Assembly: GCF_006345805.1 (NCBI RefSeq)
Contig: NC_042999.1
Coordinates: 72,602,001 to 72,666,000, forward strand
Length of the DNA stretch: 64,000 nt
Direction: 5' to 3'
Source: Octopus sinensis
Lineage: Eukaryota
The translations under genes and the position numbers were made by a program. This document shows positions 1,984-54,539 of this stretch, one piece after another; the stretch's first letter is position 1, and each line of letters starts with the position of its first letter. The notes under the pieces are model-generated. The model had not been told where the DNA came from and did not search any database. It saw only the letters and a program-made list of their open reading frames with translations.

Positions 1984-3315
1984 TATATAAAAAAAAATTG
2001 TTAGAATATTTTGTATATTGTGCCCCCCACCCAAGATACGATCCTGATGTGTCTAAATATTGCAGCTGCAGGTGAACGTTGAAAACGCTAGTGTATAATA
2101 TTAATTTTATTAATCTAAGAATGAGATAAATAGTAACAGCTTTCATGTTACTTTCTTTATAGCCAGTTATACTGGTTTCTTTACATAGACACAATAACAA
2201 ACTTTTATCACAATAGCAATAGGAATACGTAACGTCTATGGGCTTTTGTTATGTATATACACTTCAATGTTTAAGAGTAACGAAACAAATTCATGAATCG
2301 GAATATTGTTGAGGAAATTCGGTTCGAAGGGAGCTTACTCATGCAGTTTTTTAAATTTTTCTTTTTTTGTTTTAACAAGCAAAGTACGTGGTTAGTTCTA
2401 AAATCTCTATGGTATGTAAATAGTAACAATACTGAAAAATAATGTTTGTTGCCACTTCAACATGGCTGTTCGGCACGGAACTACGTTACAACCATTTTTT
2501 TTAAACTCCAGGAGGACATCTCCTCCAGCTGGTTAACGACACAACCTGTGAGATGTTCTCTTTGCTGGTTGCAAAATCAGCGGCTGAATGTCGCTTATTT
2601 TTCTATATATTGCGAGCTAGGACGAACGACTGCCTTGTCTAACAGACAAGTGTCCAGTACTGCCAAAGGGAAATACCCTGAAACCAGATTGGTATACTGA
2701 TCTGGTCATCGCTAAATGGTAGGGGTTCGCTCCCCTGCTCGCATTATATTGGACACAGGTTGTACCGTTAACCAGCTGCAGATGGCTTTCTGGGGTTTAA
2801 AAAATGTTTGTTCCGTACGGAACAGTCATATTTAAAGTGGCAAAACATTACTTTCTGCTTTTGTTACCATTTACATCTCATACAGAGATTTTAGAACTAG
2901 CTGCTTAACTTGTTGCAAAATCAGCGGCTGAATGTCGTATGTTTGTTGAAGTGGTAACAAACATTACTTTTCTTCTTTTTTTTCTTCTACTGTTTCCGTA
3001 CTATACTGCACACAACTGGACATCTTAGAGCAGTTGCAGTTGCATAACAGAGACGGGGAGGTTGCAGTGGTGGAAGTGAGTGGGTTCAGTCTGTCTACAT
3101 TTCCAGGAAAAGGGACTTTGTAAGTAATCCAATGACGTTTCTCACAGCTCAACAACACAGCCGACTCAGAAAGGCAGAGAGACGGAGAAACAGACACAAA
3201 GACAGAAACAGACAGACAGAAACAGAGAGAAGGGAGAGAGGAGAAAAGGAAGAGGAGGAGAGAGAAGTTGATAGAGAAGTGTGAGGAGGGAGAGAAGGGA
3301 AAAGCGGGAGGGTAT

Positions 3316-3652
3316 AAGGCGGCGAGCTGGCAGAAACGTTAGCACGCTGGGCGAAATGCCTAGCGGTATTTCGTCTGCGTTACGTTGTGAGTTCAAATTC
3401 CGCCGAGGTCGACTTTACCTTTCATCCTTTCGGGGTCGATAAATTAAGTACCAGTTACGTACTGGGGTCGATGTAATCGACTTAATACCTATGTCTGTCC
3501 TTGTTTGTCCCCTCTGTGTTTAGCCCCTTGTGGGTAATAAAGAAATAGAAATAGGTATTTCGTCTGCCGTTACGTTGTGAGTTCAAATTCCGCCGAAGTC
3601 GACTTTCATCTTTTCTGTGTTTAGCCCCTTGTGGGTAGTAAAGAAATAGGTA
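3316..3652 (+). mobile_element. tRNA-derived SINE family B (MetaSINE-like core) with internal partial duplication
   Basis: ggcggcgagctggcagaaacgttagc head and cctttcatcctttcggggtcgataaattaagtaccag core; the ggtatttcgtctgc...cccttgtggg segment is present twice. Confidence 0.75.
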
Positions 3653-4261
3653 TAGAGGGAGAATGGAGAGGGTGAGAGAAGCGAGAGGAAGAGTAAGAGA
3701 GGGGGAATCAATCTCGTACTAGACTGGTTCTTTATTTATCGACCCTGGAACTCATGATACCAGCCTCGCCTTTATTATCTGCAGTAAGGAAATTAACTCA
3801 GCTCTGCAAAACAAACGAAATAATCAATTCCACATTGCTGCCTTATAACGCTAGTTTACAACCTTGAGTTACCTATTCGGAACTTGAATCAACGAGAGGG
3901 CTTTGTGCGTCAGAAATAGCAGCCAAATATCCTTCATACTATTGTAGTCTTACATGCATTGTGTTAGCGGAACAAAGAAATGTGGTCACGGGTGAAATTA
4001 TTTTGACCAAAAGTTTGCTTGATTTGGGCGAACTTGGAGAAACCACAGTCGAGAATTCAGTGCAGTGACATTGCTCAGAGCTTGTGACTAGATACGAAAC
4101 CATGGACCCCAGGTTTGATGTTAGATACATTACCGATTCACCTCTGAAGGCACACTTGTTATAATTGATTTACAACACTTAATAACCGTTTTGTGTTTCA
4201 TATCATTTATTCGTAAGCGTTCGGTAAACAAATAGTATTATATAATGTTACAATACTATAT

Positions 4262-4338
<77 letters not shown>

Positions 4339-4495
4339 ATTATGTTATTATATATTAATTTATATATTATTATTATTATTATTATATAAAAAAAAATTCT
4401 ACATTTATGGAGAAGATGGAAGGTAACTGTATTGGCATTCAGTACTGATTATAGAAATGACAGTGAAATTTATACGGCAGGTACTGCTTGGTACT

Positions 4496-4580
4496 TCACT
4501 CGTTTTTTGGCCTTTTAAAAGCGCCTTCCATTCCCCAGACATCGTCACCTTCAGCAGCGTCATCTTTCGAAGGAGGGCAG
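4496..4580 (-). CDS. Terminal coding exon 3 of secreted cysteine-rich peptide precursor: (F)CPPSKDDAAEGDDVWGMEGAFKRPKNE*
   Basis: Strong acceptor ctgtttctcttttttttctctctctttctgcag|C. The phase-2 join TT|C gives Phe, then the 8th Cys (even Cys count) and TGA at 4498-4496. Possible AATAAA at 4211-4206. Confidence 0.85.
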
Positions 4581-5045
4581 CTGCAGAAAGAGAGAGAAAA
4601 AAAAGAGAAACAGTAAAGTAAAGATTACAGCATGGAGAAATGCGAAATTCGAAATATGAAAGTTATTCAATAATATGTTAAATTGTGAAGGTGGAATATA
4701 TATATATATAATAAGGCGGAATATATATATAAAATAAGCAACAAGAATGGATATATATATATAATAAAGGGTAAAATTAACTAATTAATTAATAATTATT
4801 GATAATTTTACCAAGTAGTTTCGGCATGTTAAAAGAACCATAATTGGTAAACTTAAAGAACGATTTTTTTTTATAATTATGAGTATAATTATAATTAGGG
4901 AGATTCTCTTATTGTAGAGAAATAGCTAGGTGTCTGACTGCTGTTTCTACATTTTCGTTATGTGGTGAAGCAAATTTTTTTGCTGAACCCTAATTATAAT
5001 TATACTCAAAATTATAAAAAATTGTTATATATATATATTTTTTTT

Positions 5046-5092
<47 letters not shown>

Positions 5093-5101
5093 GGTAAAGA
5101 C

Positions 5102-5300
5102 CCCCTTCGGTCATGAATGACCATGGGATTGCACCTAGAAAGTTACCCTCCTAGACACAAGTCCGGGCAAGGTTGTTTATGGAAGACGAGCAGTCGCCCA
5201 TGCATACCAGCCTCCCCTCTCCACACCACCAGTGTTATCCAAAGGAAAGACAAAGGTCGATACAGCTTGGCACCAGTGACGTCGCAACTCATTTCTACAG

Positions 5301-5304
<4 letters not shown>
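5102..5304 (-). mobile_element. SINE family C-related fragment (3' part)
   Basis: Near-identical to 50315-50490; that copy continues into gagtgaactggag, matching the core of 7081-7402. Confidence 0.65.
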
Positions 5305-5385
<81 letters not shown>

Positions 5386-5511
5386 TAATGAACCTATTTC
5401 CTACGATGAGGATGAATATTCCAGAATAGGAGGCGAGCATTTTTGTAAGAAGTAAGCTTTTGATGTAGTCTTGGTCAAGACTAAGCGACTACTAATATCC
5501 CGCAAATGTAA

Positions 5512-5722
5512 GGCGGCAAGCCGACAGAATCGTTTGCATACTGCGTAAAATGCTTAGCGGAATTTCATCTGATTTTATGATCTGAGTTCAAATTCTGCCA
5601 AGGTCGATTTTGCGTTTCATCCCCTCGAAATCGATAAAATAAGTACCAGTTGTGCACTATGGTCGATGTAATTGATTAGCCCCCTCCACCGTAATTGCTC
5701 GCCTTGTGCCAATATTTGAAAC

Positions 5723-5764
<42 letters not shown>

Positions 5765-5960
5765 GGCTGCGAGCTAGCCGAATCGTTAACACGCAGAGTT
5801 AAATACTTAGCGGCATTTTGTCCGTCTTCACAATCTGATTCCGCTGAAATCAGCTTTATATTTCAGCTTCTCGGGGTCGATAAAAGGTGCCAGTTGGGCA
5901 CTGGGGTCGATGTAATACCCCCAAATTACTGACCTTGTGCCGAAATTTGAAACCGATATC
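5512..5960 (+). mobile_element. Two tandem family B SINEs separated by (ATT)n
   Basis: Two heads (aaggcggcaagccg, aaggctgcgagctagccg), each with the gtcgataaaa-gtaccag core. Confidence 0.7.
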
Positions 5961-7080
5961 CCACAAGTGTAATTTGTATTCTATTTCTCGGCAGTATATA
6001 TCTGAATTGTGATTATCAACGAGCATTAATTGTTCCTTATATATATATATATATATATATATGACAGAGAAATAGCTTTGATGAAATTTTAGTCTAATAC
6101 CTCAACAAATTGTTTCGTAGCTTAAAGATATGTAAATAATTTATATTATTATATTTAATAATAAATAAATTACTTACATGCCTGCATTAATGCAAAATGC
6201 AAAACTCTTTCAAAATAATAACGTTTTTTCTTGAATCGTACAATATATTCTGTTTTGTAGAGTAATACACTACGGAGCTTTTTTTATGAGTACTACTGGA
6301 TTACTTGAATCCATATATTGTGACTTAAATTTATATACACACACAAACACGCACACACATACACGTATGCATATACGTATGTTCACGCACTTACGTAAAT
6401 ATGTCATCATTCGGTATATTTGGGACTCTATTTTCCAATGTATCTTTCCATAATAAAAGATGTAATTTGAAGGAATTGTAGTTACTATATCTAGCAGATG
6501 GAACACCCTAGCAGAGACTTTCTCTCGTTGGCTTGAAGTAAATTTCGTCGTTGTTGAGACATGGCCTAATAAAACTTTGATGAATAGTGTTCTAACAGTG
6601 ACAATACTGTTATTTGCTTTTCAGGAATTACATTGTTCAATATAGCTTTTAAGATGGTAGTGAATGATTAGGAAAGATTTTGCTGTTATTTTTAGCAAGG
6701 TCAAAGACCATGTATCAGTCTGTTTTACAGTTTCAATTTCATATCTTCATAGTAGGTAGCTGAAGTAACAGGTTAGTTAGTTCATCAATCATCTTTAAAG
6801 TTTTATCTTAGTTAGGGGAGGGAGGATAGAAGAAAAGATTGCGCTTACATTTATAAATATCGGCACGTTTTATGCATTATTATTATTATATAGTCATATT
6901 TTTCACTAATGATGTCTTTCTTTCACTCAAAACTAGAGAAAAGGTCATGCTAAAGTAATTTTCGATTGATTAATTTTCTTCCATCAAATCTATACGCCAT
7001 ACTCTAGCAGAAAAGACAATAATCCCTGAGGGATGTTATTACAGTCATGCATTTCCTAAGAGCATATGTGACATAAGTGT

Positions 7081-7402
7081 GAAGGCGCGTGGCTTAGTGG
7101 TTAGGGCATGCGGCTCACGATTGTAAGGTCGTGAGTTCGATTCCCGGCGACGCGTTGTGTCCTTGAGCAAGACACTTTATTTCACGTTGCTCCAGTCGAC
7201 TCAGCTGGCAAAAGTGTGTTGTACCTGTATTTCAAAGGGCCGGCCTTGTCACACTTTGTGTCACGCTGAATCTCCCTGAGAACTACGTTAGGGGTACGCG
7301 TGTCTGTGGATTGCTCAGTCACTTGCACGTTAATTTCATGAGCAGGCTGTTCCGTTGATCGTATCAGCTGGGACCCCCGTCGTCGTAACCGACGGAGTGC
7401 TC
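7081..7402 (+). mobile_element. tRNA-derived SINE family C (CORE-like domain)
   Basis: Box A (tggcttagtgg) and box B (gagttcgattcc), followed by ttgtgtccttgagcaagacactttatttcac and a non-tRNA tail. Confidence 0.75.
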
Positions 7403-7607
7403 CTCTATGACATAAGTTAGATGCACCACCTCCATCCGTCACCTCATTTTAACCCCTCTCCTCCCCATCTGACTCATGGGTATCTTTATTTGAAATAATC
7501 TGTTTTTAATCTCCGGCCTGAGAATACCTTTCCTTCTTCTTCCTCCCTCCAGTATCATTTATTATCTGACAAGGAAATAAATAATGTTTTTTGTTGTTTT
7601 AACTCAC

Positions 7608-7798
7608 AAAAACGTGTCGGCTGAACAGGCAGTTTTGAAACAGCTCTTGAAACTGGTGCAACAATCATCCTTAGAGTTTGTTTTGCGACATTCATGGAAC
7701 TGAGTTTCACATAGAGTGTAACATTGTGCGGCAGGGTTGGTAACTGCAGATGCTGCAACCACTAGTCCCAAAAGGAAAACAACGAACAGAGTTTTGAC
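7608..7798 (-). CDS. Exon 2 of secreted cysteine-rich peptide precursor: VKTLFVVFLLGLVVAASAVTNPAAQCYTLCETQFHECRKTNSKDDCCTSFKSCFKTACSADTF
   Basis: Acceptor aatttaatttaatttttctttcag|G and donor TT|GTGAGT flank a 191-nt stop-free frame encoding a hydrophobic signal peptide (A-S-A cleavage motif) and 7 Cys; ends in phase 2. Confidence 0.9.
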
Positions 7799-8188
7799 CT
7801 GAAAGAAAAATTAAATTAAATTTAGAAAAAAATATATAGCGGTGCTCCAGCTTGGCCGCGGTCAAATGACTGAAACAAGTAAAAGAAGAAAAAATGTAGG
7901 TTCCACTACGTGGTTAAGAAGCTCGCATTGCAACAACTCGTTTTCGGGTTCAATCCCATTATGCGACACCTTGAGCAAGTGTCTTCTACTACAGCACCAG
8001 GTTGACTGACTGATTGATTGATTGATTGATTGATACAAATCTAGAGGCCTATAATCAATTCGATGATTATTGCAAGTCTTCAGCTGTTACAAGTTTGGTG
8101 CGTGCGGAATTCTTCAATAAATACATTCTTCTCTTTTGTCGGCACACGTAGTTTATCAATATATACAAAGGGACACACACACACACAC

Positions 8189-8219
<31 letters not shown>

Positions 8220-8263
8220 TGTATGTATGTATGTATGTATGTATGTATGTATGTATGTATGTA

Positions 8264-8294
<31 letters not shown>

Positions 8295-8329
8295 ATGTAT
8301 GCATGTATGTACGTACGGATTATGTCAGG

Positions 8330-8720
8330 TCACTTTCGAGTGCTACTGGTAACATGTAACCCAGTACAACCTGTTGCATGGTCGGGTCGTCGGCGACTAA
8401 ACCGGCAACCTCACCAAGCTTGCTTGGTGAGGAGGATGTTTATTGGACACCCTGCGGGATGAAAAACAATATCCGTCAAAGGGCGGAGGAACTCTTGAGA
8501 GTCAACGGCCATCCAATAAATGTCTTAAGGATGTATCATGCGCAGGGACATAGAAATAATCGGACTGAATACCGGATCGCGCGGTTAAACCATTGGAAGT
8601 GAAGGACTCCTAGCCTTTGTTAAGGCAGCCTTCTAGGAGAAGGTAACTCAGGTAACTGGGATAACTCCGACATAAAACCTGCGGCTCAGTGGTTACCGAT
8701 GATGTTGACTAGTTCTTCTT
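8330..8720 (+). mobile_element. Probable 5' UTR fragment of an RTE-class LINE
   Basis: GC-richer island with an aaggcagccttctaggagaaggtaactc...aaacc motif that I associate with RTE 5' ends; no coding support. Confidence 0.35.
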
Positions 8721-8869
8721 TTTGGATTATGGCTGCTGTTGCTTAGTGAGTGGGATTGACTCAGTGCACAGCCTTTCCTCATTTTAAAAAGAATCTTCTT
8801 GCACAGGCATTGCACGATATCAACATTAATTAAGCTTCGTGCAATGGCCATACTCGATAACGAGGGGGC

Positions 8870-9630
8870 AGCCACCATGTATATACGTATGTGTATATCT
8901 GCATGTATATGTGTGTACTTTTGCGCTTGTCTATGGCCCACACCGCTTGAAAACCGGTGCTGGCTTGTTTACGTCTTCATAACTTCGCATTTCGGTCAGA
9001 AAGAGCCTTTTAAAAAAATAAGTACTGAGATCGATTTGTTCCACTAAATCGTTCAAGCCGATGCTCCAGTATGACCGCCGTTCAATGACTGAAGTAAATA
9101 AAAAGATAGAAGGTAAAATTACCTGTATAATTTTACTTGACTCAAAATTATTTTTCAGAGCATTTTACAACGTGATGGATGGAGCACGTGTAGTTATTGC
9201 ATTTTTACTAAGAGTTTAGGTTGTTTGCCAGCAATCTGATATGACATTGAAGTAAGCTGGTAACTGAGTCATGCGCGTGCGCCAGTCTAATCAGAATTTG
9301 TTTTAAAAGGCTGTGTGATTAGAAACTTGCTTCCCAACCACATAGTTCCAGGTTCAGTTCCACTGTGTTACCCCTTTGGAAAGTGTCTTCTATAGCTTCG
9401 GGCCGACCAAAGCTTTTTGAGTGGATTTGAGAGACAGAAACTGAAGGCGGCGAGCTGGTAGAAACGTTAGCACGCCGGGCGAAATGCCTAGCGGTATTTT
9501 GTCTGCCGTTACGTTCTGAATTCAAATTCTGTTGAGGTCAACTTTGCCTTTCATCCTTTCGAGGTCGATGAATTAAATACCACGATCGTAAGCTTGACGA
9601 TCTAACCACTGAGCCATGCGCCTTCACAAA
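8870..9630 (+). mobile_element. SINE cluster: family A 3' half (8870-9100), family A head fused to family B (9310-9580), inverted family C head (9585-9630)
   Basis: Segment matches to the other A, B and C copies in the window. Confidence 0.65.
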
Positions 9631-10403
9631 AGTATCTTATAAATGGCAATAGTATCTTATAAAAGAAGCTATCACGAGATTAGTGTCGTAATGCCAGTAT
9701 TGCAATGTGACCAGGAAGAACACTTGGCTCTTAATAGTACGCTCCACTTGCTCAAAATTGCCGCCTTAAGATGATACCATTGATGAGAGAAATGAAAAAT
9801 TGTATTTTATGTGTATTTACTTGGGCTAAACGCCACCAGTTTGACTTACTCTACATGAAAATTTCAATGGTGCCCCTACAATCTAATAGTATCATAACTT
9901 ACCGTATAATGGCGATAGACACAAAAGATGAAAATCGTGTTCGTGCATACTATTCACAAAATAGTAGTTGCACTTCAAGTAAAACGAAAAGTTCAAAACA
10001 AGTTAGATATTCTCTTCATTAGCGGTATCAAGTAACCGACTATCGTTTTTGTATCGCATACAATAGATTTCCTATTACTTCTTTATGCTAAAATCTTTAA
10101 GACTGTGAATCTTGTCTCTAAATACTATGCTTTAATATCGAATACACAGCTGCACAACATAATTTAAATGGTTTCCATTGTCCCAGATAAAATGACAGTT
10201 GCTTATTCAGTGAGTCAAGTTAATAACACACACACAAATAATAAAAAATATATATATCCGCATTATATAGACATTACTGACATCTATTACACATTAGTAA
10301 TATTTTACTTAGAATAACTTAGGCATCTTTACAAAGTTTCTGTGACTATTGAAGGAGTTTTGCTCTTATACCACGACACTTGATGTAATTCGTAAACGAC
10401 GAG

Positions 10404-10636
10404 CCGGCGAGCTGGCAGAATCGTTAGCACGCCGAGCGAAATCCTTAGCAGTATTTCGTCTGCCGCTACGTTCTGAGTTCAAATTCCGTCGAGGTCGACT
10501 TTGCCTTTCGTCCTTTCGGGGTCGATAAATTAAATACCAGTTACGCACTGGGGTCGATATAATCGACTTAATCCGTTTGTCTATCATTGTTTGTCCCCTC
10601 TGTGTTTAGCTCCATGTGGGTAGTAAAGAAATAGGT
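10404..10636 (+). mobile_element. Family B SINE, near full length
   Basis: ggcgagctggcagaatcgttagc head, core, and cccctctgtgtttagc...gtagtaaagaaatagg tail. Confidence 0.8.
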
Positions 10637-11499
10637 ATAATTCGTAAATGACAATGAAAATGGAATAGATGAGGTGTTTTCCTTTCATTTTTATCTTCCC
10701 CATTATGAAGCAGATCACTTCTCATACCACTAATACAACCGATGTTCTTTCTACAAGAGGCATTCAAGATTTGATTATGTATTTGTTTTTCTGTGTTTTA
10801 CCCATTTATGCTGCGGAATGAGACGCAGATAAAATTAAGTCTTGGAAATGCCCGATTTCTAGATCTCCTAAAAAGCAAAGTCACTGGGGAGGCTTTCCCT
10901 GTACATACTGCATGCTTTTAGGAAGATTTGAGTACAGAAAGGCGTTTAGTTTTCCTGCTATGAACAGTACTCCACTAGGTATACTGAGCTAACAACTGTT
11001 AAAGAAGTGTCTTTACTTTGATCCTAAAGATACTTTAATCCCAGCGTAACATCGCTGATTATATAATTATTTCAGTGGCTTGTAATGCTATGTTCAGTTT
11101 CTTTCGAAGAAAAATTACATGCTATGAACCAGCATCCAGCAATAAACCTCTATTTAAGGAGTCGCTTATTTCGCATCTAAGGTCACTGGAGATAAACATG
11201 CTGATTCAGAAATAATTAAATCGCCAGCAAGAACACGTAGAAATTGCTTATTTAAATTGGGGTGGTGGGGGCTTGTCTTTTTTTTTTTTTGTTATGTTTT
11301 GTTTTGTCTTTGCTGGGGGTGGTTTATTTTTTCAAAAAATTATTAGGAAAATAAGCGTGGTTCCACATTAGGGTTTGTTTTGTTTTGTCTTGTTTTTCCG
11401 GATGCAAACAGTATTTTTGCTTCTGAAAGAAATGAAAGTCGGCGGAAATGGAAAGAAATAAAATTTTTGGTGAATATATCATCTGTGAAAGTGCAGTGG

Positions 11500-11870
11500 A
11501 TGGGAAGATTTAACAGAGCGTTGGACAAAATACCTTGTGATATTTCTTCCGTTTCTTTATGTTCTGAGTTCAAATCTTGCTAAGAATAGCTTTGTCATTC
11601 ATCCCTCTAGGTCGATAACTAACAATCAAAAATGGTTTTTAAAGGATCGGTGTCAGGCAGAATAGATAGAGCGTTGGACAAAATGTCTTGAGGCATTTCC
11701 ACCAGCTGTTTACGTTCTGAGTTCAAATCCCGCCGAGATCAACTTTGCCTTTCATCCTTTCGGGGTCGATAAATTAAGTACCAGTTGTGTACTGGGGTCG
11801 ATGCAATCGACTGCCCCTCCCCACCTCACAAAATTTCAGGCCTTGTGCCTACAGCTGAAAGTATTGTAAC
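11500..11870 (+). mobile_element. Two diverged family B SINE copies
   Basis: agagcgttggacaaaat...ctgagttcaaat motif occurs twice; the second copy has an intact core. Confidence 0.6.
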
Positions 11871-11875
11871 TGAAC

Positions 11876-11910
<35 letters not shown>

Positions 11911-12064
11911 GTGTGTGTGTGTTTATTTCCGGCTCACTAGATTAAGTATAATAGCTTCACATAACTATATGTTCTTGTGGAAAGCACCCGAGGGTATTTT
12001 CCCACACTCAAACTCACTCACACTCATACATATATGTATGTGTGTGTGTATTTATGTACGTATG

Positions 12065-12240
12065 TCTTTACTTTTTTCACTTGTTTCAGTCATTGGACTG
12101 CAGCCATACTGGGGCACCTCCTTGAATGATTTAGCCACACAAATCGACACCAGTACTTTTAAGTCTATCGGTTTCTTTTGGCGAACCGCTAAGTTATGAA
12201 AGTGTAAACAAGCGATGGTGGCGGGGGCAAGCACAAACGC
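12065..12240 (-). mobile_element. Family A SINE, 3' half
   Basis: tttcacttgtttcagtcattggactgcagccatactgg...gaaccgctaagtta matches the family A tail. Confidence 0.65.
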
Positions 12241-12845
12241 AAAGATGCGTAGGACTTCTACACATTCTCTCATAAAGCATTAATTGGTCCGGGACTTGAA
12301 TTCTAGTCGAACGTCTGGACCATTCTCTTACGTAATTGTAGTTTTTCACCATGGTATATTATCAGCAGTGTGAAGGTGGTGGGTAGCAGAATCGGTAAAC
12401 TGGTCGACTAAATATGTTGCAGAAATCTAATATCATGCCCACCTACTCTTTTTTTTTTTCTGAGTTCAAATCATGTCGGTGTCGACAATGCTATTCATTC
12501 TTCCATCATTGGTAAAATATTTAGAAGTCACTTTGATTGATTGTTTCTTCTCCCTACATACAAAAATATTCCTTTGAGTTTGAGTTTGTTAGAAATCGTT
12601 GTCGGCTTTGTAGTTGTCATATCACCAAAGACGTACTGTGTATTTGGATTTGACTGTCCTGACATGATTCTTATTTACTATTTCTCTAACTTTCTTTTCT
12701 AAACTAGCAGCACGTGAAAAAGTCACCAAGGTTGTATGATATCTATCAATCGTCTCAACGTCTCAACCAAGTCAATGAAAGTAAGAAAGGAAAGAAGAAA
12801 AACTCATTGATTAACAAATCTTGGAAAACATGAATATCTACTCAC

Positions 12846-12848
12846 CAT
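12846..12848 (-). CDS. Coding part of exon 1 (start codon only) of a secreted cysteine-rich peptide precursor gene; exon 1 predicted ~12846-12921
   Basis: Minus strand reads CAACAATG|GTGAGT: ATG in a good context followed directly by a consensus donor (12845-12840). Phase 0 matches exon 2, which opens with a signal peptide lacking only Met. Confidence 0.8.
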
Positions 12849-12918
12849 TGTTGTATATGTCTGTTGAACTGACTTGACTGCTGAAGGAGAGAAATGTCCT
12901 GACCAAACGTCAATAGAT

Positions 12919-12954
12919 TCTGATGCAAGCCTGATAGACCTTCACGTATTTATA
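12919..12954 (-). promoter_or_regulatory. TATA box and initiator-like element of the cysteine-rich peptide gene
   Basis: TATAAATA at 12954-12947 and TCAGAAT with A at 12921, about 33 nt downstream; gives a ~73-nt 5'UTR before the ATG. Confidence 0.6.
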
Positions 12955-14136
12955 TATTCACTTAAGTCTACAGATATTTAGATATGATCAGGTGTCATGT
13001 ATCCCACGCAAGCATTCGTTGTTTGTATAAGCACGCGTCAAAGAGGGTGTAGTGGGGTGGGAAACTGAGGAGTAAAGGGCTCTTCCAGTTGTATCATTTG
13101 TCAATACCAGCCAACCTCATTCTCACCAAAAATCCCAATAAGTTCAAACCCCTGAGAAAGCTAGGGATTTATGTTAGGATGGGCGACAGCATTCTTCATT
13201 AAGACTTTCCCTTAGTTGTAAGTGTTGTTGTTGCTACAGTTGCATTCATTGAAATTATTGATGGGGGTATCGTCATTATCCTTATTTTTGCTGTAGATGC
13301 TGCTAATGTGTACATGACAAATATTCGGAAGAGTCCCCAGGTCTGGATGCCAGCACGCAGTAGTGTTTGTTTAAGCAGCCTGTCTCGTTTTGCAACGTTT
13401 TACTTCTGGACAATGATAAACGGAAAAACATGCGCAGCACGTGTGAATGAATAGAAAGTATGAGAGTCAGACGTGTGCACTTTTATGTAATAACAGGATG
13501 GACAAATGAACGATCTATAGAGGGACTACTGTTTAAGTCGCGCAAAACAAATAGAGATTTAAAAGAAGAATTTACAAAGAGTTAAATATAAAAACAAAAA
13601 AAATGGTTATCATTACGTATAGAGCAATTACTGACAAGTTATGTATGATATAATTCCAACAGCATGCATCACAGATAAGTGTATTGGTTCTATTTAAATA
13701 CCACCTTGTGTATCGGTTTCTTCCCTTTTGTTTGACAAAGCAAAGGGTATTATATCTTAGCTTAAATAAAACGGTGAGTGCTGTGACGTTCATCGTTTTC
13801 TTGAGGTTATTAGCGGAGTAAGTGAAGTTAAAGTGGCTGAACTGAGAAATGAGATCGCGCCGAGGACTGAACAGCAGCTTACCTGATTAGGTCCGTCAGG
13901 CCCGTTGCCAGACTTTGGTACCTGCGGGGGCTTCAGAATATTCTGGGTGAACACTAGTTAGTAATAATGCTAAAGCAGAGTTTCGAAATAAGTGTATCAC
14001 TGTAAATCTGAGAGTGCACCCTTGAATAGTGAAGGAGCAGTGCCGTCCAGGGCAACCCCTTAGCGACGAACATGGAGTTCGTACAGTACCTTACTTGTTA
14101 GGGTTAAATTCAAAACCCGGGGGGAACTAGTGCTGG

Positions 14137-14137
<1 letters not shown>

Positions 14138-14201
<64 letters not shown>

Positions 14202-14220
14202 TTCATCATCATCATCATCT
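14138..14220. repeat. (CAT)n microsatellite
   Basis: Direct reading. Confidence 0.95.
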
Positions 14221-14583
14221 TTAGCCATCACCACCACCTTCACCACTACCATCATCAGCAACAACTTTTGGGCATCTTTTTAGAACTTTGTACGCAAAGT
14301 TGTCCCGACTTAATAAAGACGTAAACTCTGGGTCTTTTTTTTAATTTTAATTCAATGCCTTTTTTTTCTCAGTTTATAGTTTTTTCTTTTTTTCTTGTTC
14401 TGTACAGAAGAGGCTACTCCGCTATAACAGCAGTCTGAGCGGGATTTTGAACTCAGAACGCACAAAGTCAGAACATATACTGCCGCAAGACATCTCATTC
14501 GGTGTTCTGACAATTGCACCCAATTCTCAGCCCTGGATAAAAGACAACTGTCCACAACCAAAGCGATAGACCACACACACACA

Positions 14584-14696
<113 letters not shown>

Positions 14697-15141
14697 ACAC
14701 TCACGCATACACACTCTCTCTTTCTCCCCCCCCCCTCTCTCTCTCTTCCTCATTCACTTCTAAGATGTAGACACTGAAATGTTAGATTTTTCGTTCCTCA
14801 CAGCAACTGAACTTATAGAACAACCCCTACCTGTCTGTTCCCTACAAGGCATACCTTAATGTCTAGGATAATTTCAACCAATTCGGCACTGAGAATTTAT
14901 ATTTTAAGAGAAAAGAAATAAGAAGTTATGACGTCATTGCCATTCCCAATTGTAGTGAAACTGGTAAGACATAGGTGAGTGGTTAAGAAGTTCCCTTCAC
15001 AACTATGTGGTTTCAGCTTTGATCCCACCATGCAGTACCTTGATCAAATGTCTTCTGGTCTTCTGTCATAGTCTCGGTGTGAACAATACTGTGAGAAAGG
15101 AATTGTGAGGCACACGCACACACACACACACACACATGTAT

Positions 15142-15575
15142 ATGGTATTTTTTTATAAGCTTAAAGCTTAAAGTGATTACAGTGCAAATGACTAAGGAAA
15201 ATAGTCTAATAATGGGGCATATAAGCCCTCAACAGAAAAAAAGTAGGCTTTCCCGTACGCGTGGGACACGAATCCACATCCCTTTGTTAACGCAACTAAA
15301 TGTGTTACCGATTACACCAGACAACCAGCCTGCTCCCTTCTGTCAAATTTAAGAACTATATTATTTCGTAGTTGTTTTTGTAAACTAACTTTATGTGCTT
15401 TCGGTGCGAATGGTTTTGTTAAGCGGTGTCGAGTTTTACAAGTACGGGAAAGCCTACTTTTTTAGACTATTTTCTTTAGTCATTTGCACGGCGATCGCTA
15501 TAAGCTTTGAGCTTATAAAAAATACCATTATTATTATTTACAGAATTGTAAAACTCAACACGGCTTAACAAAACC
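15142..15575. mobile_element. Nested inverted-repeat element containing a tRNA-like segment, adjoining a Penelope-like remnant
   Basis: ~68-bp IR arms at 15142-15210 and 15462-15528; inner IR aaagtaggctttcccgtac/gtacgggaaagcctacttt; third IR 15413-15442/15546-15575; minus strand 15322-15252 has box A and box B-like motifs. Confidence 0.6.
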
Positions 15576-15858
15576 AGTGGAGAAAGGAACCAAAGTGACT
15601 CTTGTAGGTTTTTTTTTTTTTTTATTAGCATGGAGAAGTTGTTTCCACGTGTAGACAGTGAGATATTTTCATCCAATGGCTGGGAGTCCAGAATGACTGA
15701 CGGCAGTAAGTTGTTGCAGCTATCATTACATTCTCTCTGTTCCGCTGAATTTTGAATTTCACCGAAACCCTGGCATGAAAGGTAAGAGAGATAGTAAGCA
15801 CAGCTCACCGATCAAAATTGTGGCACATCATTGAAATATGTAAAAAGATAAAAGTTAG

Positions 15859-16126
15859 TTATGCGTGCATATTAAGACGTGTTCTGTATTTTTCAATGAA
15901 AAAAGTTTCTTTATTTAAACGTTCTTGTGGAGAGATTGTGTCTTTGCACTGGTAGAAAGGGAAGACTGTGAAATTTGGTTTGATACTATCTGCACATTTT
16001 TCTGTATGTTCCCTGAGAAGAATTTGCCTGTGTTGCGGGAAACGGATTTGCTCTTTATGTAGAGTGGTTCTCTTTCTCAAGGTCACCCTCGTCTGTCCAA
16101 TATAGTTGTGTCCGCAACTCGAGCAG
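15859..16126 (-). mobile_element. Penelope-like element, GIY-YIG endonuclease C-terminal fragment
   Basis: CSSCGHNYIGQT..LRKR...HKEQIR...H..KC...FTVFPFYQ...R..KE.FFIEKY...LN* is a PLE GIY-YIG signature. Confidence 0.85.
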
Positions 16127-16560
16127 AAAAAGAAACAGAAAAAGAAACAGACTACATCATGAACTTCAAATGTAAACCCAGTCTTTTTTACGGCCTTCCT
16201 AAAATACATAAGAGCAAGATAATCAATGAAGCCTGCAAACAATCACCAGGCAAATACATAAATATCCAAACGCCAGAAGACTTAACTTTAAGACCCATTG
16301 TAGCTGGGCCAGCCTGTGAAACCCACCGCCTAAGCAATTTTCGAGACATCCTACTGAAACCCTTGCTGAATACATCAAAAGTTTCATTAGAGATGATTTA
16401 GACATGCTAGGACACCTACCAAAAACAATTAATGAAGAGGCAATATTGGTTACCATCGATGCTATCAATCTTTACACCAACATCCCCCATGACTACGGAA
16501 TAAAAGGAATTACATTCTAGTTGGAAAAGTACCCGAAGTACTCAAGGAACGCATAAATCA
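16127..16560 (+). mobile_element. Penelope-like element, reverse transcriptase N-terminal fragment (frameshifted)
   Basis: FYGLPKIHK...LRPIVAGP...HRLS...DILLKP, then after a frameshift DDLDMLGHLP...LVTIDAINLYTNIPH. Confidence 0.85.
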
Positions 16561-16578
16561 GATCTTTATACTATATAT

Positions 16579-16954
16579 ATGTAACATACGGTATAATTAT
16601 AAACAGAGAAAGTTTTAGCCATTCGCAAACTGAAAAAACGATGAACAACCTTAATCGATTTTTAGAGCCTTATTGGGTTCTCATCAGAGGCGTCTACACC
16701 ATTCTGACAGTCTCCAGTGAAACAAGCAGGCAAGCTGTTTATATGCTCAACAAATGCGGCAGTTACTCTATGAAGGGGTCCTAATTTGCATGCCGAAAGT
16801 GTTTAACACTCTATAAATACCAGCGGTCTGTCAACGGAAATCTTAGTCCACAAGTATCAAGGTATGATATAATAAACATGTAACACATGGTATAATTATA
16901 AACAGGGCAAATTTTAGCCATTTCTCCGCAGACTTAAAAAAACGATGAACAACC
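16579..16954 (-). mobile_element. ~300-nt direct-repeat unit (pLTR- or retrozyme-like) carrying a degenerate hammerhead ribozyme
   Basis: Direct repeats at 16579-16650 and 16878-16954, with a hammerhead motif between them. Confidence 0.7.
16646..16694 (-). ncRNA. Degenerate minimal type I hammerhead ribozyme (G12 lost)
   Basis: cct-CTGATGA-gaaccc aata aggctc-tAAAA-atcgat-TA-agg: stem I cct/agg, palindromic helix III AATCGATT, GAAA core mutated. Confidence 0.6.
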
Positions 16955-17095
16955 ATATACATACATACATACATACATACATACATACATACATACTACA
17001 TACATACATACATACATATATACATACATACATGCATACACACACACACACACACAACACACACACACACACACACACCACACACACACACACAC

Positions 17096-17168
<73 letters not shown>
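16955..17168. repeat. Compound (CATA)n/(CA)n/(TA)n microsatellite
   Basis: Direct reading. Confidence 0.95.
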
Positions 17169-17169
<1 letters not shown>

Positions 17170-18482
17170 TAGCAGAGATACCCGGCATTGCCCGTGTTAC
17201 ATACAATTGAAGAATTAAACATTTCTGTTATATTTTCTGTAATGAACTGGAATATCTATGTTTCGAATTTCATCAAAATTGCAGATGAGGGTTATTTCCC
17301 TCTTTACACACCCTAAAAAATTGTAATCGTGCCATATGTATCCCATACTACTGATTTTTATGTGCATATTCCAAAATTCCAGTCTTATTGAACCTGTTAA
17401 AAAGATTTTGCTCCTGAAAAATGAAGGTCATGGAGCTCTAAAATGTGAGAGTTAAGGCCCCTGTTGGGGGTGGTGGGCATCTTAATGTCAACCAGAGAAG
17501 TTGAATTGTTGAGAATCTTTTTACCTTGGGTCTTATATCTATTATTTGAATTTCTTTGAAATAGGAAATATATGTTCACTGGGTTTGTAAAAGAGAGCAA
17601 AGCTACAGGAAACCAAAAGACGAATGATCAGAATAAGCAGTCAGTTACCCTACCCTTGTCGTTACCACTCCCAATGTAGGATTTCTCACCATCCAGGTGA
17701 CAGGCACAGCCGTAAGATGCATTACGAATCCATAGCAATTGGAAGGGCGTGACCCAACTGAAATCAATAACTGTGTGACGTGAGGGCTAAGGAGAAATGA
17801 AAGTGTCACCTCTGGAGTTTTCAAATGGCTACTATACTGATACGAAACTGGACAGAATAAGTTTACAATCTATAAATGTCTTTGAATAACCAGTCACTCA
17901 TCTGAGAAGGCCTTGAAATCAATGTTACCATCTGGGGACTATGTGTGACCGAGTGGTAATAAAAAGACTGAAAGGGGGTTCGCAATCAAATATCTTTACT
18001 CAACACTTTGCAACTGAATCAGTGGAGGCAAAGATGCCTCTCATTTACTTGACAATTTATGCACCACATTGCAGAAATCACTATGTAAGTGTATGTCAAA
18101 GCAAACTGTTACACTGTTGTACCACTGAATTAGATATAATGCCCAACTTTTATGCTCGGGTAACCCTACAGCTTCCAAGAGCACAACTGTATTCGTTTTT
18201 GCCTAGATAAAATGACAAAATTGTGAGTGTTAAGTCCCCATGGAGGGGGTCTTTCTAACTTGTAAGAATATGAAATTTTATAAATATTACTTCATTTGTG
18301 TCTAATATCTATGGTTAAAATTTCATCAACACCAAAAATATATGAATTGTCATGGGGGTTATGGCCTTTATGCATAGAATATAATTTCCAAATTTCATAA
18401 AGATCCATTCAGTACTTTTGACCTAGTTTTGGATCATGAAAGAAATGACTAAAATTTGGGAGTTAAGGCTCCCATTAGCATG

Positions 18483-18520
<38 letters not shown>

Positions 18521-18537
18521 ATATATATATAGATAGA
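17169..18537 (-). mobile_element. Non-autonomous Helitron-like element
   Basis: Minus-strand 3' end cgggcaatgccggg hairpin ...CTAG|T at 17169; TC-initiated (TA)-rich 5' end near 18537; no ORF. Confidence 0.55.
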
Positions 18538-18595
18538 AGAGAGAGTAGAGAGAGAGAGAGAGAGAGATATAGATAGATGAGAGATAGATAGATAG

Positions 18596-18656
<61 letters not shown>

Positions 18657-18891
18657 GATAGATAGATATATACACCACACCATACAAAGATAAATTGATA
18701 GATACAACTGAGTGGGCAAACAAAAATATGAGACACAGCCTAGTGCTTTTTTTTGTGTTGATAAGCCTGGTACTTATTCTTCTATTTATTTTGTTCTTGT
18801 GAAACCAGTAAGTTATGTGGATGTAAAAAATAATGACAGCAGTTGTGAAGCAGTGATGAGGGCGAACACAGAGACAAAGACACACACATGT

Positions 18892-18958: not shown

Positions 18959-21677
18959 CATTGTTGTTGGCATACTTTTTGTCTCAGTAGACAATGGAGT
19001 TGCGCATAAAATAATCTAGTCTGGCTTTTACATTTCATGTCTTAATACATCTCCTGCTGTGGCTGTGTAGTCCTATCCTGGACAAACACTCCCTTTGGCA
19101 GTTGCCGCAAATGTAGCGAAGACTTTGCCTGGCTGGTTGTAATGTCATAGTTTCTTGTTGACATTTTTTCTTGTCTTTCCATTTCTCCTCTCTCTCTATG
19201 TCACTCCTTTGTGTTCCCTCTTTTACGGTACGTCGCCAATCTCCACGGTTACTGGCAACTGCTTCCCAGTTGGTAATATTGATGTTGCAGGCATTCATGT
19301 CCCTTTTGCAAACAACCTTGTATTGTAAGAACGGTCTTCCCACAGACCTAGTGCCCCTAGTAAGCTCTCCGTTGAGTATGTCCTCGGGGATTCTGCCACC
19401 TTCCATACGGCTAACATGTCCAAGCCATCTCATACGTCTTTGTGTGAGGAGTGCAAATATGCTTGGTATTCCTGCTTGCTTGAGGACATGATTCTGCCAT
19501 TTGATGCGAAGGATTTTCTGGAGGCAGCGCAGGTGAAAGATATTTAGGCGACGCTCATGGCGTGTGTATGGCGTCCAAGTCTCACTTCCATACAGTAGAG
19601 TGCTAAGTACATATGCCTGGTAAATCTTCATTTTTGTGGTCTTGGTCAGCTTATTGTTGTCCCATTCTCGTTTGGAGAGTTGGGCCATCACAGCAGCTGC
19701 CTTGCCAATGCGTATATTGAGCTCAGCATCAAGGGATAGGATGTAGGTGACAGTAGAGCCAAGATAGGTAAACCTCTCCACCTCCTGTAGTCTGTGGTCT
19801 CCAAGATGTATGTTTGGGATGTCCGATGTAGCCTGACTCATGATGTTGGTCTTCTTGAGGTTGATAACTAAGCCAAAGTTGCCACATGCTTGCTCAAAAC
19901 AGTTGATGAGTCTTTGTAGGGATTCTTCTGTGTGTGATATCAGAGCGGCATCATCAGTAAATAGCATCTCCTTCTTCAGGACGCTTCTGATTTTGGTCTT
20001 GGCACGCAAACGCAAGAGATTGAACAGTTTCCCATCACTTCTACCGTGCAGAAACACTCCATCATCTGATGTCTCAAAGGCATGTGACAGCAGCAGCGAG
20101 AAGAAGATGCCAAATAATGTAGGAGCAAAGACACAACCTTGCTTTACTCCATTTTTTATTTGGAAGGCGGCTGATGTTGAACCATTGTGCTGTATGGTGC
20201 CTTGCATATCATCATGGAAAGATTTGATGATCCTCAGCAGCTTTGGTGAACATCCAATTTTTTGGAGCAGGATGAAGAGGCCTTTTCTACTTACCAAGTC
20301 AAAGGCCTTTGTCAGATCAATGAAGGCCATATATAATGGCATTTCCTTCTCTCTGGACTTCTGAAGTTGGTGTTTGGAGAATATCATGTCAATAGTTGAT
20401 CTGCTTCTTCTAAAGCCACACTGCGACTCTGGATAAATTCGAGAAGCAAGCAGTTGCAGCCTGAACAGGATAATGCGAGCAAAGGCCTTTCCAACAGTGC
20501 TTAGAAGAGATATTCCACAGTAATTGTTACAATCACCACGGTCGCCTTTGTTTTTGTAAAGCGTAATGAAGTTAGCATCCCGCATATCCTGAGGGACTGT
20601 ACCCTCTTCCCAGCACTGACACAGAAGCTCACGTATGTGCCGAAGCAGGATGGTGTTTTTGCCGGTTTTGATGATCACTAAGTAGATGCCGTCTTTTCCC
20701 GGAGCCTTTGTTACTTGCTAGGGAGTCAATAGCCTTGGTGAGCTCTGCTATAGATGGCAGACTGTCAAGCTCGAACATGACTGGCAAGATCTTGACACCC
20801 TCGATTGCAGCCTCAGCTACCATGGTCTCCCGTGAGTAGAGATCCTGGTAGTACTCCACCCATCTATCCATTTGCTTGCTTTGGTCCTTGATGAGATCTC
20901 CAGTAGTTGATTTCAGAGGAGCTGACTTGGTTGCGGATGGACCGAGGGCCTTCTTCAAACCGGCATACATCCCACGGGTGTCGCCACTGTCAGCAGCTGA
21001 CTGGATACTCTGACAGATTTTCTGCCAATACCTGTTTGCACAGCGTCTGGCAGTCAGTTGGGTTTTATTTCTTGCCTTTCTGAATTTTTCAAGTGACTTT
21101 GTAGAAGAATCACTCTTGTATTACATCAGAGCTGCACGCTTTGTTTCGATAACTGTTTCCAGCTCTGAAAGCCCAGCACTGAACCAATCTGGGTTTTGCC
21201 TTTCTCTCATGCCGAAAGTATCTATTGATGTGATATACAAAGCTTCCCTGATATAATTCCATCTACTTTCAGCAGAGGAGGTTGGGCAGCTACTGAGGGC
21301 AACCTTCATAGAAACAGCAAAACATTGTCGCAGTGTAGGGCCGGAGGTTCTGGCAGTGTTAATGCGTGGTCGGCCCATTTTCTTGGAGTGATGGACTTTT
21401 TTAGGCAGAATCCTCACCCTGCTTCTTATTAGTGAATGATCTGTATCACAATCCGCGCTGTAGTAACTACGGGTCATTTGAACAGAATTCAGAAAGGATC
21501 TTCATGTAATTATGAGATCCAACTGATGCCAGTGGTAAGATCTTAGATGTCTCCAAGATGCCTTATGGGATGTCTTGTTGGCAAAGAATGTGTTAGTGAT
21601 GCACACATTATGGTATGTGCAAAATTCAAGTAGTCTCTGACCATTGTCATTCATGTTGCTAATACCAAACCACATAC
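18959..21677 (-). mobile_element. RTE-BovB clade LINE, 5'-truncated within the endonuclease domain, ORF2 disrupted
   Basis: RT motifs (FIDLTKAFD, GVKQGC, LFTDD, FTYLGS), EN C-terminus (GQRLLEFC, WHQLDLIIT, DTDHSL), C-terminal CGNC..HSHSRRC zinc finger, short 3'UTR with (CAA)n tail, flanking 67-bp duplication. Confidence 0.95.
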
Positions 21678-32425: not shown

Positions 32426-33485
32426 TTTTTTTTTTTTTTTGTCGCTGATGTAGTCTAGATTTCAGCTTTTCATTTGCAAAAGGTTATATACAACCAGTTA
32501 GACATATTACCTTCATATTTCTCTTTTGTTATTTTTTTTTCATTTAGGAAGTGTCTAATACTGAAAATAACACACTACATTTACTACGTCCTAATCAATT
32601 GGATAATTATGGTTAGGAGCTATACATCTTAACGGCATTAAGTTTTGTCTCACCATGTTCAAAACCACTTCAGTTGACTTTGCCTTTCGACTACGGAAGG
32701 TAATAAATGATGACAGGGTACGGAAATAGATTCAAATTCAATTGATTACATTCCTTTTTATGCAAACTTTGGATTTATGCCTAGTCAAAAGAATATAGTT
32801 GTTAGTTATAGAAAAACACTTCAACCGGAAGTTCGACAACCAATTGATTCGGCAGTTCTGATTCGTCACAACTTTATTAGGATTTGTCATCGTCCCCACC
32901 AATCTTATCGAGGTCCCTCGTAATCCCTCACAATAGTTGGTGACTATTTTTCTCCCAGCTATTGTCTACTTTCATTGACAACCTTAATAAAAGTTTCAAG
33001 GAAGTTGATTCATCTGTAATGACAAAATGATATTGATTTAAGATTACAATATATGTTGACTTAACATTTAAACTTGACACACGAGAAGTACCATTTCATG
33101 TAATTGTTATTTACGCACAGAACACCGCCTCAATTTAATATTCTATGAACGCTGACATGTCACGTTTTATGTAACTATGCGAGCTACTTTTAATCCAGGT
33201 CAATTTAATTTCCTATAAGATAAATTCTTTGGAGGTTTTAAACATTAACCCGTTCTGGAGACTAGACTTTAAAAGGTTTTAAAGGTATTAAGCTTTCTCC
33301 AGACGTTCTAATGCTTTGTCCGCTAAAGATTTCAACTGATTTTATTTTAAAAGTACATTATTAGGTAACATCACCAGCAAAAAATAAATGAAAGAATTTA
33401 TAATTATCAACGATGAGAATAAACCATAAATACAAACTTAAATTTCATCTGATTTCTCTTTCATGTATCCTTTTCTACTATAGGA

Positions 33486-33681
33486 ACAAGGCCCGAAATT
33501 TTGGGAGAGGTGCCCAATCGATTAGATCGACCCAAGTACGCAACTGGTACTTAATTTATCGACCCCGAAAGAATAAAATGCAAAGTTGACATCAGCGTAA
33601 TTTGAACTCAGAACGTAAAAAAAGACGAAATACCGCTAAGCATTTTGCCCGGCGTCCTAACGTTTCTGCCAGCTCGCCGCC
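33486..33681 (-). mobile_element. Family B SINE
   Basis: Reverse complement of the family B head and core. Confidence 0.75.
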
Positions 33682-34119
33682 ATCTCTCTTTCATATATTA
33701 TATACGAACTGTAAAAGCCAAACTTGATAAGTATTTTGAAAATCTGACAAATGAAATACGACTCAAACTATATATAGCAAAGAGAATGTATTAAGAAACA
33801 AAACTCTTCTATTTTAATTTGAAGACTTTTTCACTTAGAATTGGTGCAAAACGAGCAAGTGGATCTTATACAATTTAAAAGATTGCATCTCGTTTAAGGA
33901 AAGATTGGTATCTATCAAAACGAAAACAGATATGAATTTGAGAATAAGTCGAAGAGCAGCCACAGGACAGAACGAGTAATAATAAAAACGCTTGGCAAAT
34001 TGAGCAACTTTCCTCGAAATAAATATAGATTTAAACAATCTCGCTAAAGCCCGTAAATATAATTATTTTTAAAAAAGAGAATATTCTCAATGTTATTCAC
34101 TATTTTTATTCTGCTAAAT

Positions 34120-52613: not shown

Positions 52614-53171
52614 TTACCTACATACATGCAGCATACGTATTACAATAACATATATACGTATTATATTTACTTGTATAGAACACCTGAAGGCGATCGAATC
52701 ACTGAAATTTAAGCACTTTTAATTGGAACGTGTTTCAACGTTACCTAAAACTCTGTCTTAAACCACCATCCAAACCACCATCCTAAACTACTAATGCATA
52801 CATTTTCACAGAATACCTATTAACACTCACCACTATATACACTTTCTCTAAGCTTACAAAACAGGAATTCGAGTGCCATTAGAAATACCACCCGGTTTGG
52901 GATTCATTCAAGCGTCAATAGTCACTGAAACTTACTCGACAATTGTGACATTGTTTCAAATAAATTTACTGTGGTTTCATTTTTCTTTTTCTTTTAACAA
53001 TCATTCGCAGCTACTTTAGAGTAAGGCACGTAAGTGATTTTCTGTTTTCCTCAGTTTTACCTTGAAATTTAAAAAAAAAACAATGTTTTTGGGGGAGTTT
53101 TTTTCCATATAATTATTCGTTCTTCTAGCCAAGTATTTCATAATAATCCTTTTTCTTTTTTCACTGTAAGC

Positions 53172-54190: not shown

Positions 54191-54245
<55 letters not shown>

Positions 54246-54455
54246 GTTTCAAATTTTTCCACAAGGGCAGCAATCTTGGGGGAGGGGATGAGTCGATTAC
54301 ATCGAATCAGTCTTCAACTGGTACTTATTTTATTGAACTCGAAAGGATGAAAGGCAAGGTTGACCTCGGCGGAATTTGAACTCAGAACGGAGCGGCAGAC
54401 GAAATGCCGCAAAGCATTTTGTCCGGCGAACTAACGACTCTGCCAGCTTGTCGCC

Positions 54456-54458
<3 letters not shown>
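53172..54458 (-). mobile_element. Three tandem family B SINEs (53172-53372, 53390-53608, 54244-54458) separated by (AAT)n tracts
   Basis: Each shows the reverse-complement family B head and core. Confidence 0.75.
53635..54243 (+). mobile_element. R4/Dong-clade non-LTR element 3' end (RLE domain, 3'UTR, (AAT)n tail)
   Basis: Stop-free WKLC..WYRH.PE.V.EN..ATILWDMPIHTDR..NRPDIVV..LIDVSVP..EKLSKYKDL..PIIVGALG; flanked by (AAT)n on both sides. Confidence 0.9.

Positions 54459-54539
<81 letters not shown>

Follow-up and report, generated by a model that had tools for sequence, protein, structure and literature searches.

A probable three-exon gene for a small secreted eight-cysteine peptide in the Octopus vulgaris group

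A 64,000-nucleotide (nt) stretch of the Octopus sinensis genome (NCBI RefSeq assembly GCF_006345805.1, contig NC_042999.1, positions 72,602,001 to 72,666,000 of the forward strand; hereafter the window) carries on its minus strand, between positions 12848 and 4496, a spliced reading frame for a small cysteine-rich peptide. It is probably a single-copy, three-exon protein-coding gene of an Octopus vulgaris-group genome, a claim that we make jointly with secretion of the product and its folding as a helical hairpin. The coding sequence (CDS) of 279 nt, obtained by direct reading and then by mechanical splicing, comprises 92 codons and a stop. It specifies a precursor with a signal peptide and eight cysteines, and an almost identical protein is on deposit for O. 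vulgaris. An uncharacterised, taxon-restricted, small, secreted and disulfide-rich peptide is a familiar kind of gene, and this one is so far known from the O. vulgaris group alone.

The gene model and its splice sites

The first-pass annotation of the window, made from the letters and a list of open reading frames (ORFs), proposed three exons on the minus strand. That model is borne out: splicing it reproduces the exact 92-amino-acid (aa) peptide given there, the donors read GTGAGT, the acceptors are pyrimidine-rich and end in AG, and the introns fall in phases 0 and then 2. Its coding parts and introns are these.

12846-12848, minus strand: exon 1, whose only coding portion is the ATG, reading CAACAATG before the donor GTGAGT, phase 0
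7799-12845, minus strand: intron 1, 5047 nt, phase 0
7608-7798, minus strand: exon 2, 191 nt, covering codons 2-64 and bases 1 and 2 of codon 65, with seven of the eight cysteines
4581-7607, minus strand: intron 2, 3027 nt, phase 2
4496-4580, minus strand: coding part of exon 3, which finishes codon 65 and continues with Cys66, the acidic tail PPSKDDAAEGDDVWGMEGAFKRPKNE and the stop codon TGA at 4498-4496

The acceptor of exon 2 reads TTTTTCTTTCAG before GTC, and its donor TTT TT before GTGAGT. A pyrimidine tract of 30 nt and CAG lead into exon 3, the acceptor reading CTCTCTTTCTGCAG before CTGC. The junction of start codon and donor that defines the first coding exon is matched by few sites: along the minus strand of the window, ATGGTRAGT is found at 12848 and 23658 only. 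All three exons consist of unique sequence set between repeat-rich introns.

The second junction has a particular bearing on the product. The eighth cysteine had been described as arriving across this junction, and indeed the codon for Cys66 lies immediately past it. When exon 2 is read through without the second splice, the frame ends in ...TFL* and holds seven cysteines, so that the cysteine count turns even (eight) solely through splicing.

A chance origin of this ORF is unlikely. Across the six frames of the window, all other cysteine-rich ORFs between stops (at least 50 codons) are translated (TG)n-type microsatellites. Two ORFs of this length pass the filters for both cysteine content and a strongly hydrophobic leader, the second of them again of the microsatellite type. 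Composition-matched shuffles of the sequence yielded 0.2 ORFs with at least seven cysteines, and none that had a leader too.

The secreted precursor and its cysteines

The proposal that the peptide is secreted finds support in a classical signal peptide. On direct reading, residues 1-19 consist of MVK, which supplies a lysine (K3), a 12-residue hydrophobic core (TLFVVFLLGLVV) and AASA ahead of V20. Mean Kyte-Doolittle hydropathy over 12 leader residues is 3.25. The leader has the n-, h- and c-regions of a generic secretory precursor, with small residues at -3 and -1, and its residues 2-19 are encoded at nt 7798-7745 within exon 2. Judged from this arrangement, the signal peptide is probably cleaved after Ala19 (AASA/VT).

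The mature product predicted in this way has 73 aa, a mass of 8.1 kDa, an isoelectric point (pI) of 5.0 and a net charge of about -4. The core, residues 20-66, is close to neutral in charge, and the C-terminal tail of 26 residues is acidic. The spliced translation confirms the eight cysteines and their positions at 27, 31, 38, 47, 48, 54, 59 and 66, separated by gaps of 3, 6, 8, 0, 5, 4 and 6 residues. The first-pass account of these spacings was right in part: C-x3-C does occur once and C-x6-C twice, but C-x5-C and C-x4-C are present as well and had been left uncounted.

The Octopus vulgaris counterpart

A word-indexed search of 5.8 billion proteins returned a sole match, CAI9719506.1 (A0AA36ANR1), a 92-aa protein of O. 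vulgaris that is 99% identical over 100% of the query and bears the name "Hypothetical predicted protein [Octopus vulgaris]". Through this model the gene is already in public databases, and its earlier description as hidden has to be withdrawn, since the CDS is annotated in O. vulgaris with a single residue different (L30P).

The corresponding O. vulgaris locus (L001, on chromosome record OX597816.1 of GCA_951406725.2) has a recorded CDS at 10001-18820, which opens with the ortholog of the exon 1 ATG and closes with that of the exon 3 TGA; both later exons, 2 and 3, occur there in unchanged order and with unchanged lengths. Window and locus are about 98-99% identical, with many insertions and deletions. 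The CDS itself differs at two bases only and is intact in both genomes. At position 7713 (codon 30), CTA in the window corresponds to CCA in O. vulgaris, so that the window encodes Leu30 and O. vulgaris Pro30; the other difference, CCT to CCC at position 7733 (codon 23), is silent and leaves Pro23. The Leu30 version of the peptide is absent from a collection of 15 billion proteins, so that in the genome from which the window was taken the gene may lack an annotation.

How the O. vulgaris model was made bears on how much it can be trusted. Iso-Seq and RNA-seq assemblies (PASA/TransDecoder) went into that annotation together with ab initio predictions by Augustus and GeneMark, merged by EVidenceModeler (PMC10700109). 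The underlying RNA came from embryos, paralarvae, adult brain lobes and arm, and salivary gland was not among the sources. From the form of the O. vulgaris model we infer a contribution of such data, as a first coding exon that is an ATG alone, placed 5 kb upstream, is normally the product of transcript evidence.

Search for relatives

The peptide had been assigned to no recognised family, and this assessment stands: searches of Pfam, of the PDB, and of collections of 5.8 billion and 1.84 billion proteins produced no credible relative beyond the O. vulgaris protein, and a fold search likewise produced none. Nothing in Pfam matched at E ≤ 10. An antibody matched by phmmer among PDB sequences (E = 2.6) was set aside as chance.

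The exhaustive phmmer search, covering 1.84 billion representatives, recovered P0002 in addition to the O. vulgaris ortholog, and nothing else; the E value of P0002, 4e-4, reflects a score summed over three repeats. P0002 is an uncharacterised secreted protein of 350 aa, encoded by a transcript contig of run SRR29179194 (Logan; L002, 59-1111, plus strand). Its three near-identical repeats are about 113 aa long and have 10 cysteines each, around an invariant C-V-T-x-C-E core that mostly reads CVTPCET. Homology would have to run through a repeat of roughly 95 residues with 10 cysteines, but the alignment with the octopus peptide takes in 26 columns about the motif C-x-T-P-C-E-T-x4-C, and beyond the third cysteine the two patterns part. 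As a relative P0002 was rejected: profile-profile comparison with hhalign gave a probability of 7.7%, and for this reason the match is taken as a local motif coincidence. Relatives of P0002 itself were found only in a marine-eukaryote catalogue (MERC), and together with it they make up an unannotated family. Pfam matches in this family were sub-threshold or marginal, to QSOX_Trx1 for P0002 and to DUF6221 for its relatives P0003 and P0004.

The exhaustive phmmer search also revealed no paralogue among the deposited O. vulgaris proteins, and a tblastn search of the peptide across the window recovered its own exons and no paralogue. A weak tblastn match at 63912-63947 was discarded as a paralogue, its frame being interrupted by stops. 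A literature search for the peptide strings and accessions found no paper containing them.

Predicted fold and disulfides

AlphaFold2 was run twice without an alignment, once on the O. vulgaris (Pro30) precursor and once on its mature part. Both runs predict two helices, at residues 23-41 and 44-59, with a predicted local distance difference test (pLDDT) score of 82-87 over residues 30-60 and a disordered tail. On a helical wheel C27, C31 and C38 lie within 40 degrees of one another on helix 1, and on helix 2 the pair C47/C54 occupies one face and C48/C59 another. The index sums 27+59, 31+54 and 38+47 (or 48) all come to 85-86. Such constant sums lead one to expect three disulfide rungs across an antiparallel hairpin that turns at residues 42-43. 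The likely pairing would then be 27-59, 31-54 and 38-47 (or 38-48), with the spare cysteine of the CC pair joined to C66. The disulfide-stapled helical hairpin put forward at the outset is thus upheld by AlphaFold2 as to its two helices, while the connectivity of its disulfides is deduced from the cysteine positions only.

The steps from precursor to product would be as follows. The nascent chain would enter the endoplasmic reticulum co-translationally and lose its signal by a cut after Ala19, and the eight cysteines would form four disulfides within the secretory pathway. Residues 23-41 and 44-59 would pack against one another as an antiparallel two-helix hairpin with three disulfide rungs, and C66, contributed by exon 3, would tie down the tail via the leftover cysteine of the CC pair. 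The form released from the cell would comprise a rigid helical hairpin, about 40 residues long, followed by a flexible acidic tail.

Possible roles of the peptide

The product is more likely to serve as a diffusible extracellular ligand (a neuroendocrine or paracrine factor, or a chemical cue) than as an enzyme or a structural protein. We lean towards such a role because the peptide is predicted to be stable and compact, and is non-cationic and single-copy. A ligand is preferred to a toxin or an antimicrobial peptide because no paralogue was found in the window or among deposited O. vulgaris proteins, because the charge is acidic to neutral, and because the RNA behind the O. vulgaris annotation did not include salivary gland. 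The preference is tentative, and we hold it at somewhat less than even confidence. The venom, pheromone or hormone roles named in the first-pass annotation are guesses.

Several observations weigh against this picture of gene, fold and function. The arguments for a ligand are indirect, and the gene model is backed by automated annotation. Among the other cephalopod proteomes in the searched collections none yielded an orthologue, and with two CDS differences a selection test against O. vulgaris has no power. The structure is a single-sequence prediction with a mean pLDDT of 64-70, and searches of both AlphaFold2 models against the PDB with Foldseek gave no usable match (best E 7). Moreover, L30P places a proline inside predicted helix 1, so that this helix may really start near residue 30. 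The only dibasic site is the KR at 87-88, followed by proline. A dibasic site in front of proline is a poor context for convertases, and C-terminal trimming of the peptide is uncertain on that account. Vanabin2, which shares 32% identity, was tried as a fold relative and dropped at a Foldseek probability of 0.01.

Some of these observations would fit a different account, in which the locus holds a young ORF specific to the lineage, transcribed and spliced without a selected function: a de novo gene, a decaying one, or simply a good-looking annotation. Such an ORF would be expected to lack homologues, and none was found outside the O. vulgaris group in the searched collections; one of the two CDS differences is, moreover, the helix-breaking L30P. 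This account must nevertheless accommodate a signal peptide placed right after the acceptor, cysteines on matching faces, an even cysteine count and a confident helical prediction, a combination unlikely to arise jointly by chance, along with a CDS that is intact in both genomes. We consider it distinctly improbable, though not to the degree of the antimicrobial role discussed below.

A salivary-gland venom toxin, that is, a disulfide-rich peptide directed at an ion channel or receptor of prey, is the next role to be weighed against that of a ligand. The precursor is small, secreted and endowed with eight cysteines, its cysteine order is that of conotoxin framework XIII (PMC6321112), and many short secreted proteins restricted to cephalopods are expressed in the salivary glands of these animals (bioRxiv 10.64898/2026.02.02.703354). 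That said, a shared cysteine-order label is no homology, and no toxin family was matched in Pfam or among the 1.84 billion proteins. Venom families are usually expanded, whereas this gene is single-copy with no tandem paralogues. The RNA that underlies the O. vulgaris model included none from salivary gland, and the sequence was not found in the supplementary tables of a salivary-gland peptide study of that species. All told, a venom role is plausible but unlikely, if somewhat less so than a functionless ORF.

Molluscs have many small defence peptides stabilised by cysteines, and a secreted, small and cysteine-stabilised product could in principle serve as a host-defence or antimicrobial peptide of mucus, haemolymph or egg coat. 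The mature form is acidic, however, with its pI of 5.0 and net charge of about -4, and the hairpin core is neutral rather than amphipathic and cationic. An antimicrobial role is unlikely on the strength of this charge, and the peptide was not found in the supplements of a skin-mucus proteogenomic study of O. vulgaris. Of the roles considered here this is the least probable.

There is also the larger prospect that the peptide is the first representative of a family of bioactive peptides restricted to octopods. Their shared scaffold would be new: two helices in a hairpin held by three disulfide rungs, with a fourth disulfide tethering an acidic tail. As neurohormone, chemical cue or toxin, such a peptide would engage a specific receptor or channel. 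This is a speculative proposal, and on present evidence a rather doubtful one. Lineage-restricted short secreted proteins are numerous in cephalopods, and some of them may be the basis of venom, chemical communication or neuroendocrine control in animals whose nervous systems are unusual. Orphan cysteine-rich peptides are common in animal genomes, and nothing so far indicates an unusual mechanism in this case. A compact eight-cysteine helical peptide would be easy to produce and to test. The locus is also instructive for annotation, as ORF-based scans miss genes whose first coding exon is an ATG alone.

Flanking signals, repeats and neighbouring genes

The gene is flanked by candidate signals for the start and end of transcription.

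12949-12956, minus strand: TATA-like box (TATATAAA), with an initiator (Inr)-like TCAGAA some 35 nt downstream
12918-12923, minus strand: the Inr-like TCAGAA, a putative transcription start that would give a 5' untranslated region (UTR) of about 73 nt
4206-4495, minus strand: putative 3' UTR, with AATAAA at 4211-4206, 285 nt past the stop

A TATA box and an Inr had been reported upstream of the gene, and both are indeed present, but the TATA box adds little evidential weight. The window is AT-rich and contains 1396 occurrences of TATAWAW, and because TATA-like words are so common in it, a TATA box alone is weak evidence. In the putative 3' UTR, a (TA)n tract at 4257-4385 contains a 45-nt insertion or deletion relative to O. 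vulgaris.

Repeats dominate both introns. Intron 1 contains many interspersed repeats resembling short interspersed nuclear elements (SINEs) and a (TATG)31 array at 8190-8315. Intron 2, about 450 nt shorter than its O. vulgaris counterpart, contains TA/AT microsatellites as well as SINE-like repeats. The SINE-like family is about 140-230 bp long, with copies that are 70-90% identical at 3315-3548, 5509-5721, 9444-9582, 10402-10634, 11656-11860, 33472-33684, 53159-53608 and 54205-54496; several of these lie inside the two introns of the peptide gene. A 54-bp repeat fragment at 7839-7892, 91% identical to 55313-55366, ends about 40 nt upstream of the exon 2 acceptor, and the intron next to that acceptor may therefore be partly repeat-derived. 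Throughout the window (TG)n-type microsatellites abound, and they translate to spurious 'CVCVCV' ORFs.

The syntenic site of the peptide gene lies upstream of SERINC. Next to the peptide gene and directed away from it, the O. vulgaris annotation places a 75-aa gene, on the plus strand of the window from 15630 (on the minus strand of L001, up to 7287). The first exon of this 75-aa gene reads MEKLFPRVDSEIFSSNGWESRMTDGSKLLQ... and its product starts MEKLFPRVDSE. The protein was considered as a paralogue and rejected, having neither a leader nor the cysteine pattern nor any domains, and it looks like a doubtful gene model. Inside the region covered by this annotated neighbour lies an ORF of 547 codons (19035-20678, minus strand) that matches Pfam RVT_1 at E = 1.2e-29 and belongs to a retroelement of the long interspersed nuclear element type. 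There is an assembly gap of 100 N at 58160-58259, and scans of the window for tRNAs and Rfam families returned nothing.

Comparison with known systems

One point of reference is a set of proteins from the same group of animals. Twenty-seven superfamilies of short secreted proteins of unassigned function, with no homologues outside Cephalopoda, have been described from cephalopod salivary glands (bioRxiv 10.64898/2026.02.02.703354). The octopus peptide resembles them in being short, in having a signal peptide and in its lack of homologues outside cephalopods; it differs in that no sign of salivary expression was found for its gene. Another comparison is with insulin and relaxin, characterised by the A-chain motif CC-x3-C-x8-C and by a C-peptide flanked by dibasic sites. 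In the octopus peptide the CC pair is followed by x5-C-x4-C, there is no internal dibasic site, and no Pfam insulin match was obtained at E ≤ 10.

Conotoxin framework XIII has the cysteine order C-C-C-CC-C-C-C (PMC6321112), and the first-pass annotation noted that the octopus peptide has it too. The order of the eight cysteines is identical, but the resemblance goes no further than this label. The loops of the octopus peptide are longer, its predicted fold is helical, and its source is a cephalopod rather than a cone snail. Homology to conotoxin precursors of the G-superfamily, which would show in a conserved signal and pro-region, was sought in Pfam, where no family matched at E ≤ 10, and among the exhaustive HMMER matches, which include no conotoxin; no relationship is thus apparent.

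Attractin, the water-borne pheromone of Aplysia, had been named as a second likeness, and like the octopus product it is a small secreted mollusc peptide. Attractin reportedly consists of two antiparallel helices with nested disulfides I-VI, II-V and III-IV. The index sums make a nested ladder of this kind plausible for the octopus peptide, and AlphaFold2 predicts two antiparallel helices for it. On the other hand, it has eight cysteines where attractin has six, with other spacings, a CC pair and an additional acidic tail. BLASTP of the octopus peptide against the attractin sequence, which is identical to PDB 1T50_A, gave E = 0.21 over 9 residues, and phmmer against PDB sequences likewise showed no similarity to attractin. 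The octopus peptide lacks the IEECKTS motif, and 1T50 was not retrieved when the AlphaFold2 models were searched with Foldseek. The resemblance is therefore architectural at most, with no similarity in sequence.

The cystine-stabilised (CS) alpha/alpha hairpins, exemplified by the alpha-hairpinins of plants and the kappa-KTx peptides of scorpions, offer a further likeness at the level of the predicted fold, a helix-turn-helix whose helices are joined by disulfides. Hairpins of the alpha-hairpinin type have two C-x3-C motifs, one per helix, and four cysteines. The octopus peptide has a single C-x3-C (C27-C31) on its first predicted helix and CC-x5-C-x4-C on its second, and is predicted to form four disulfides.

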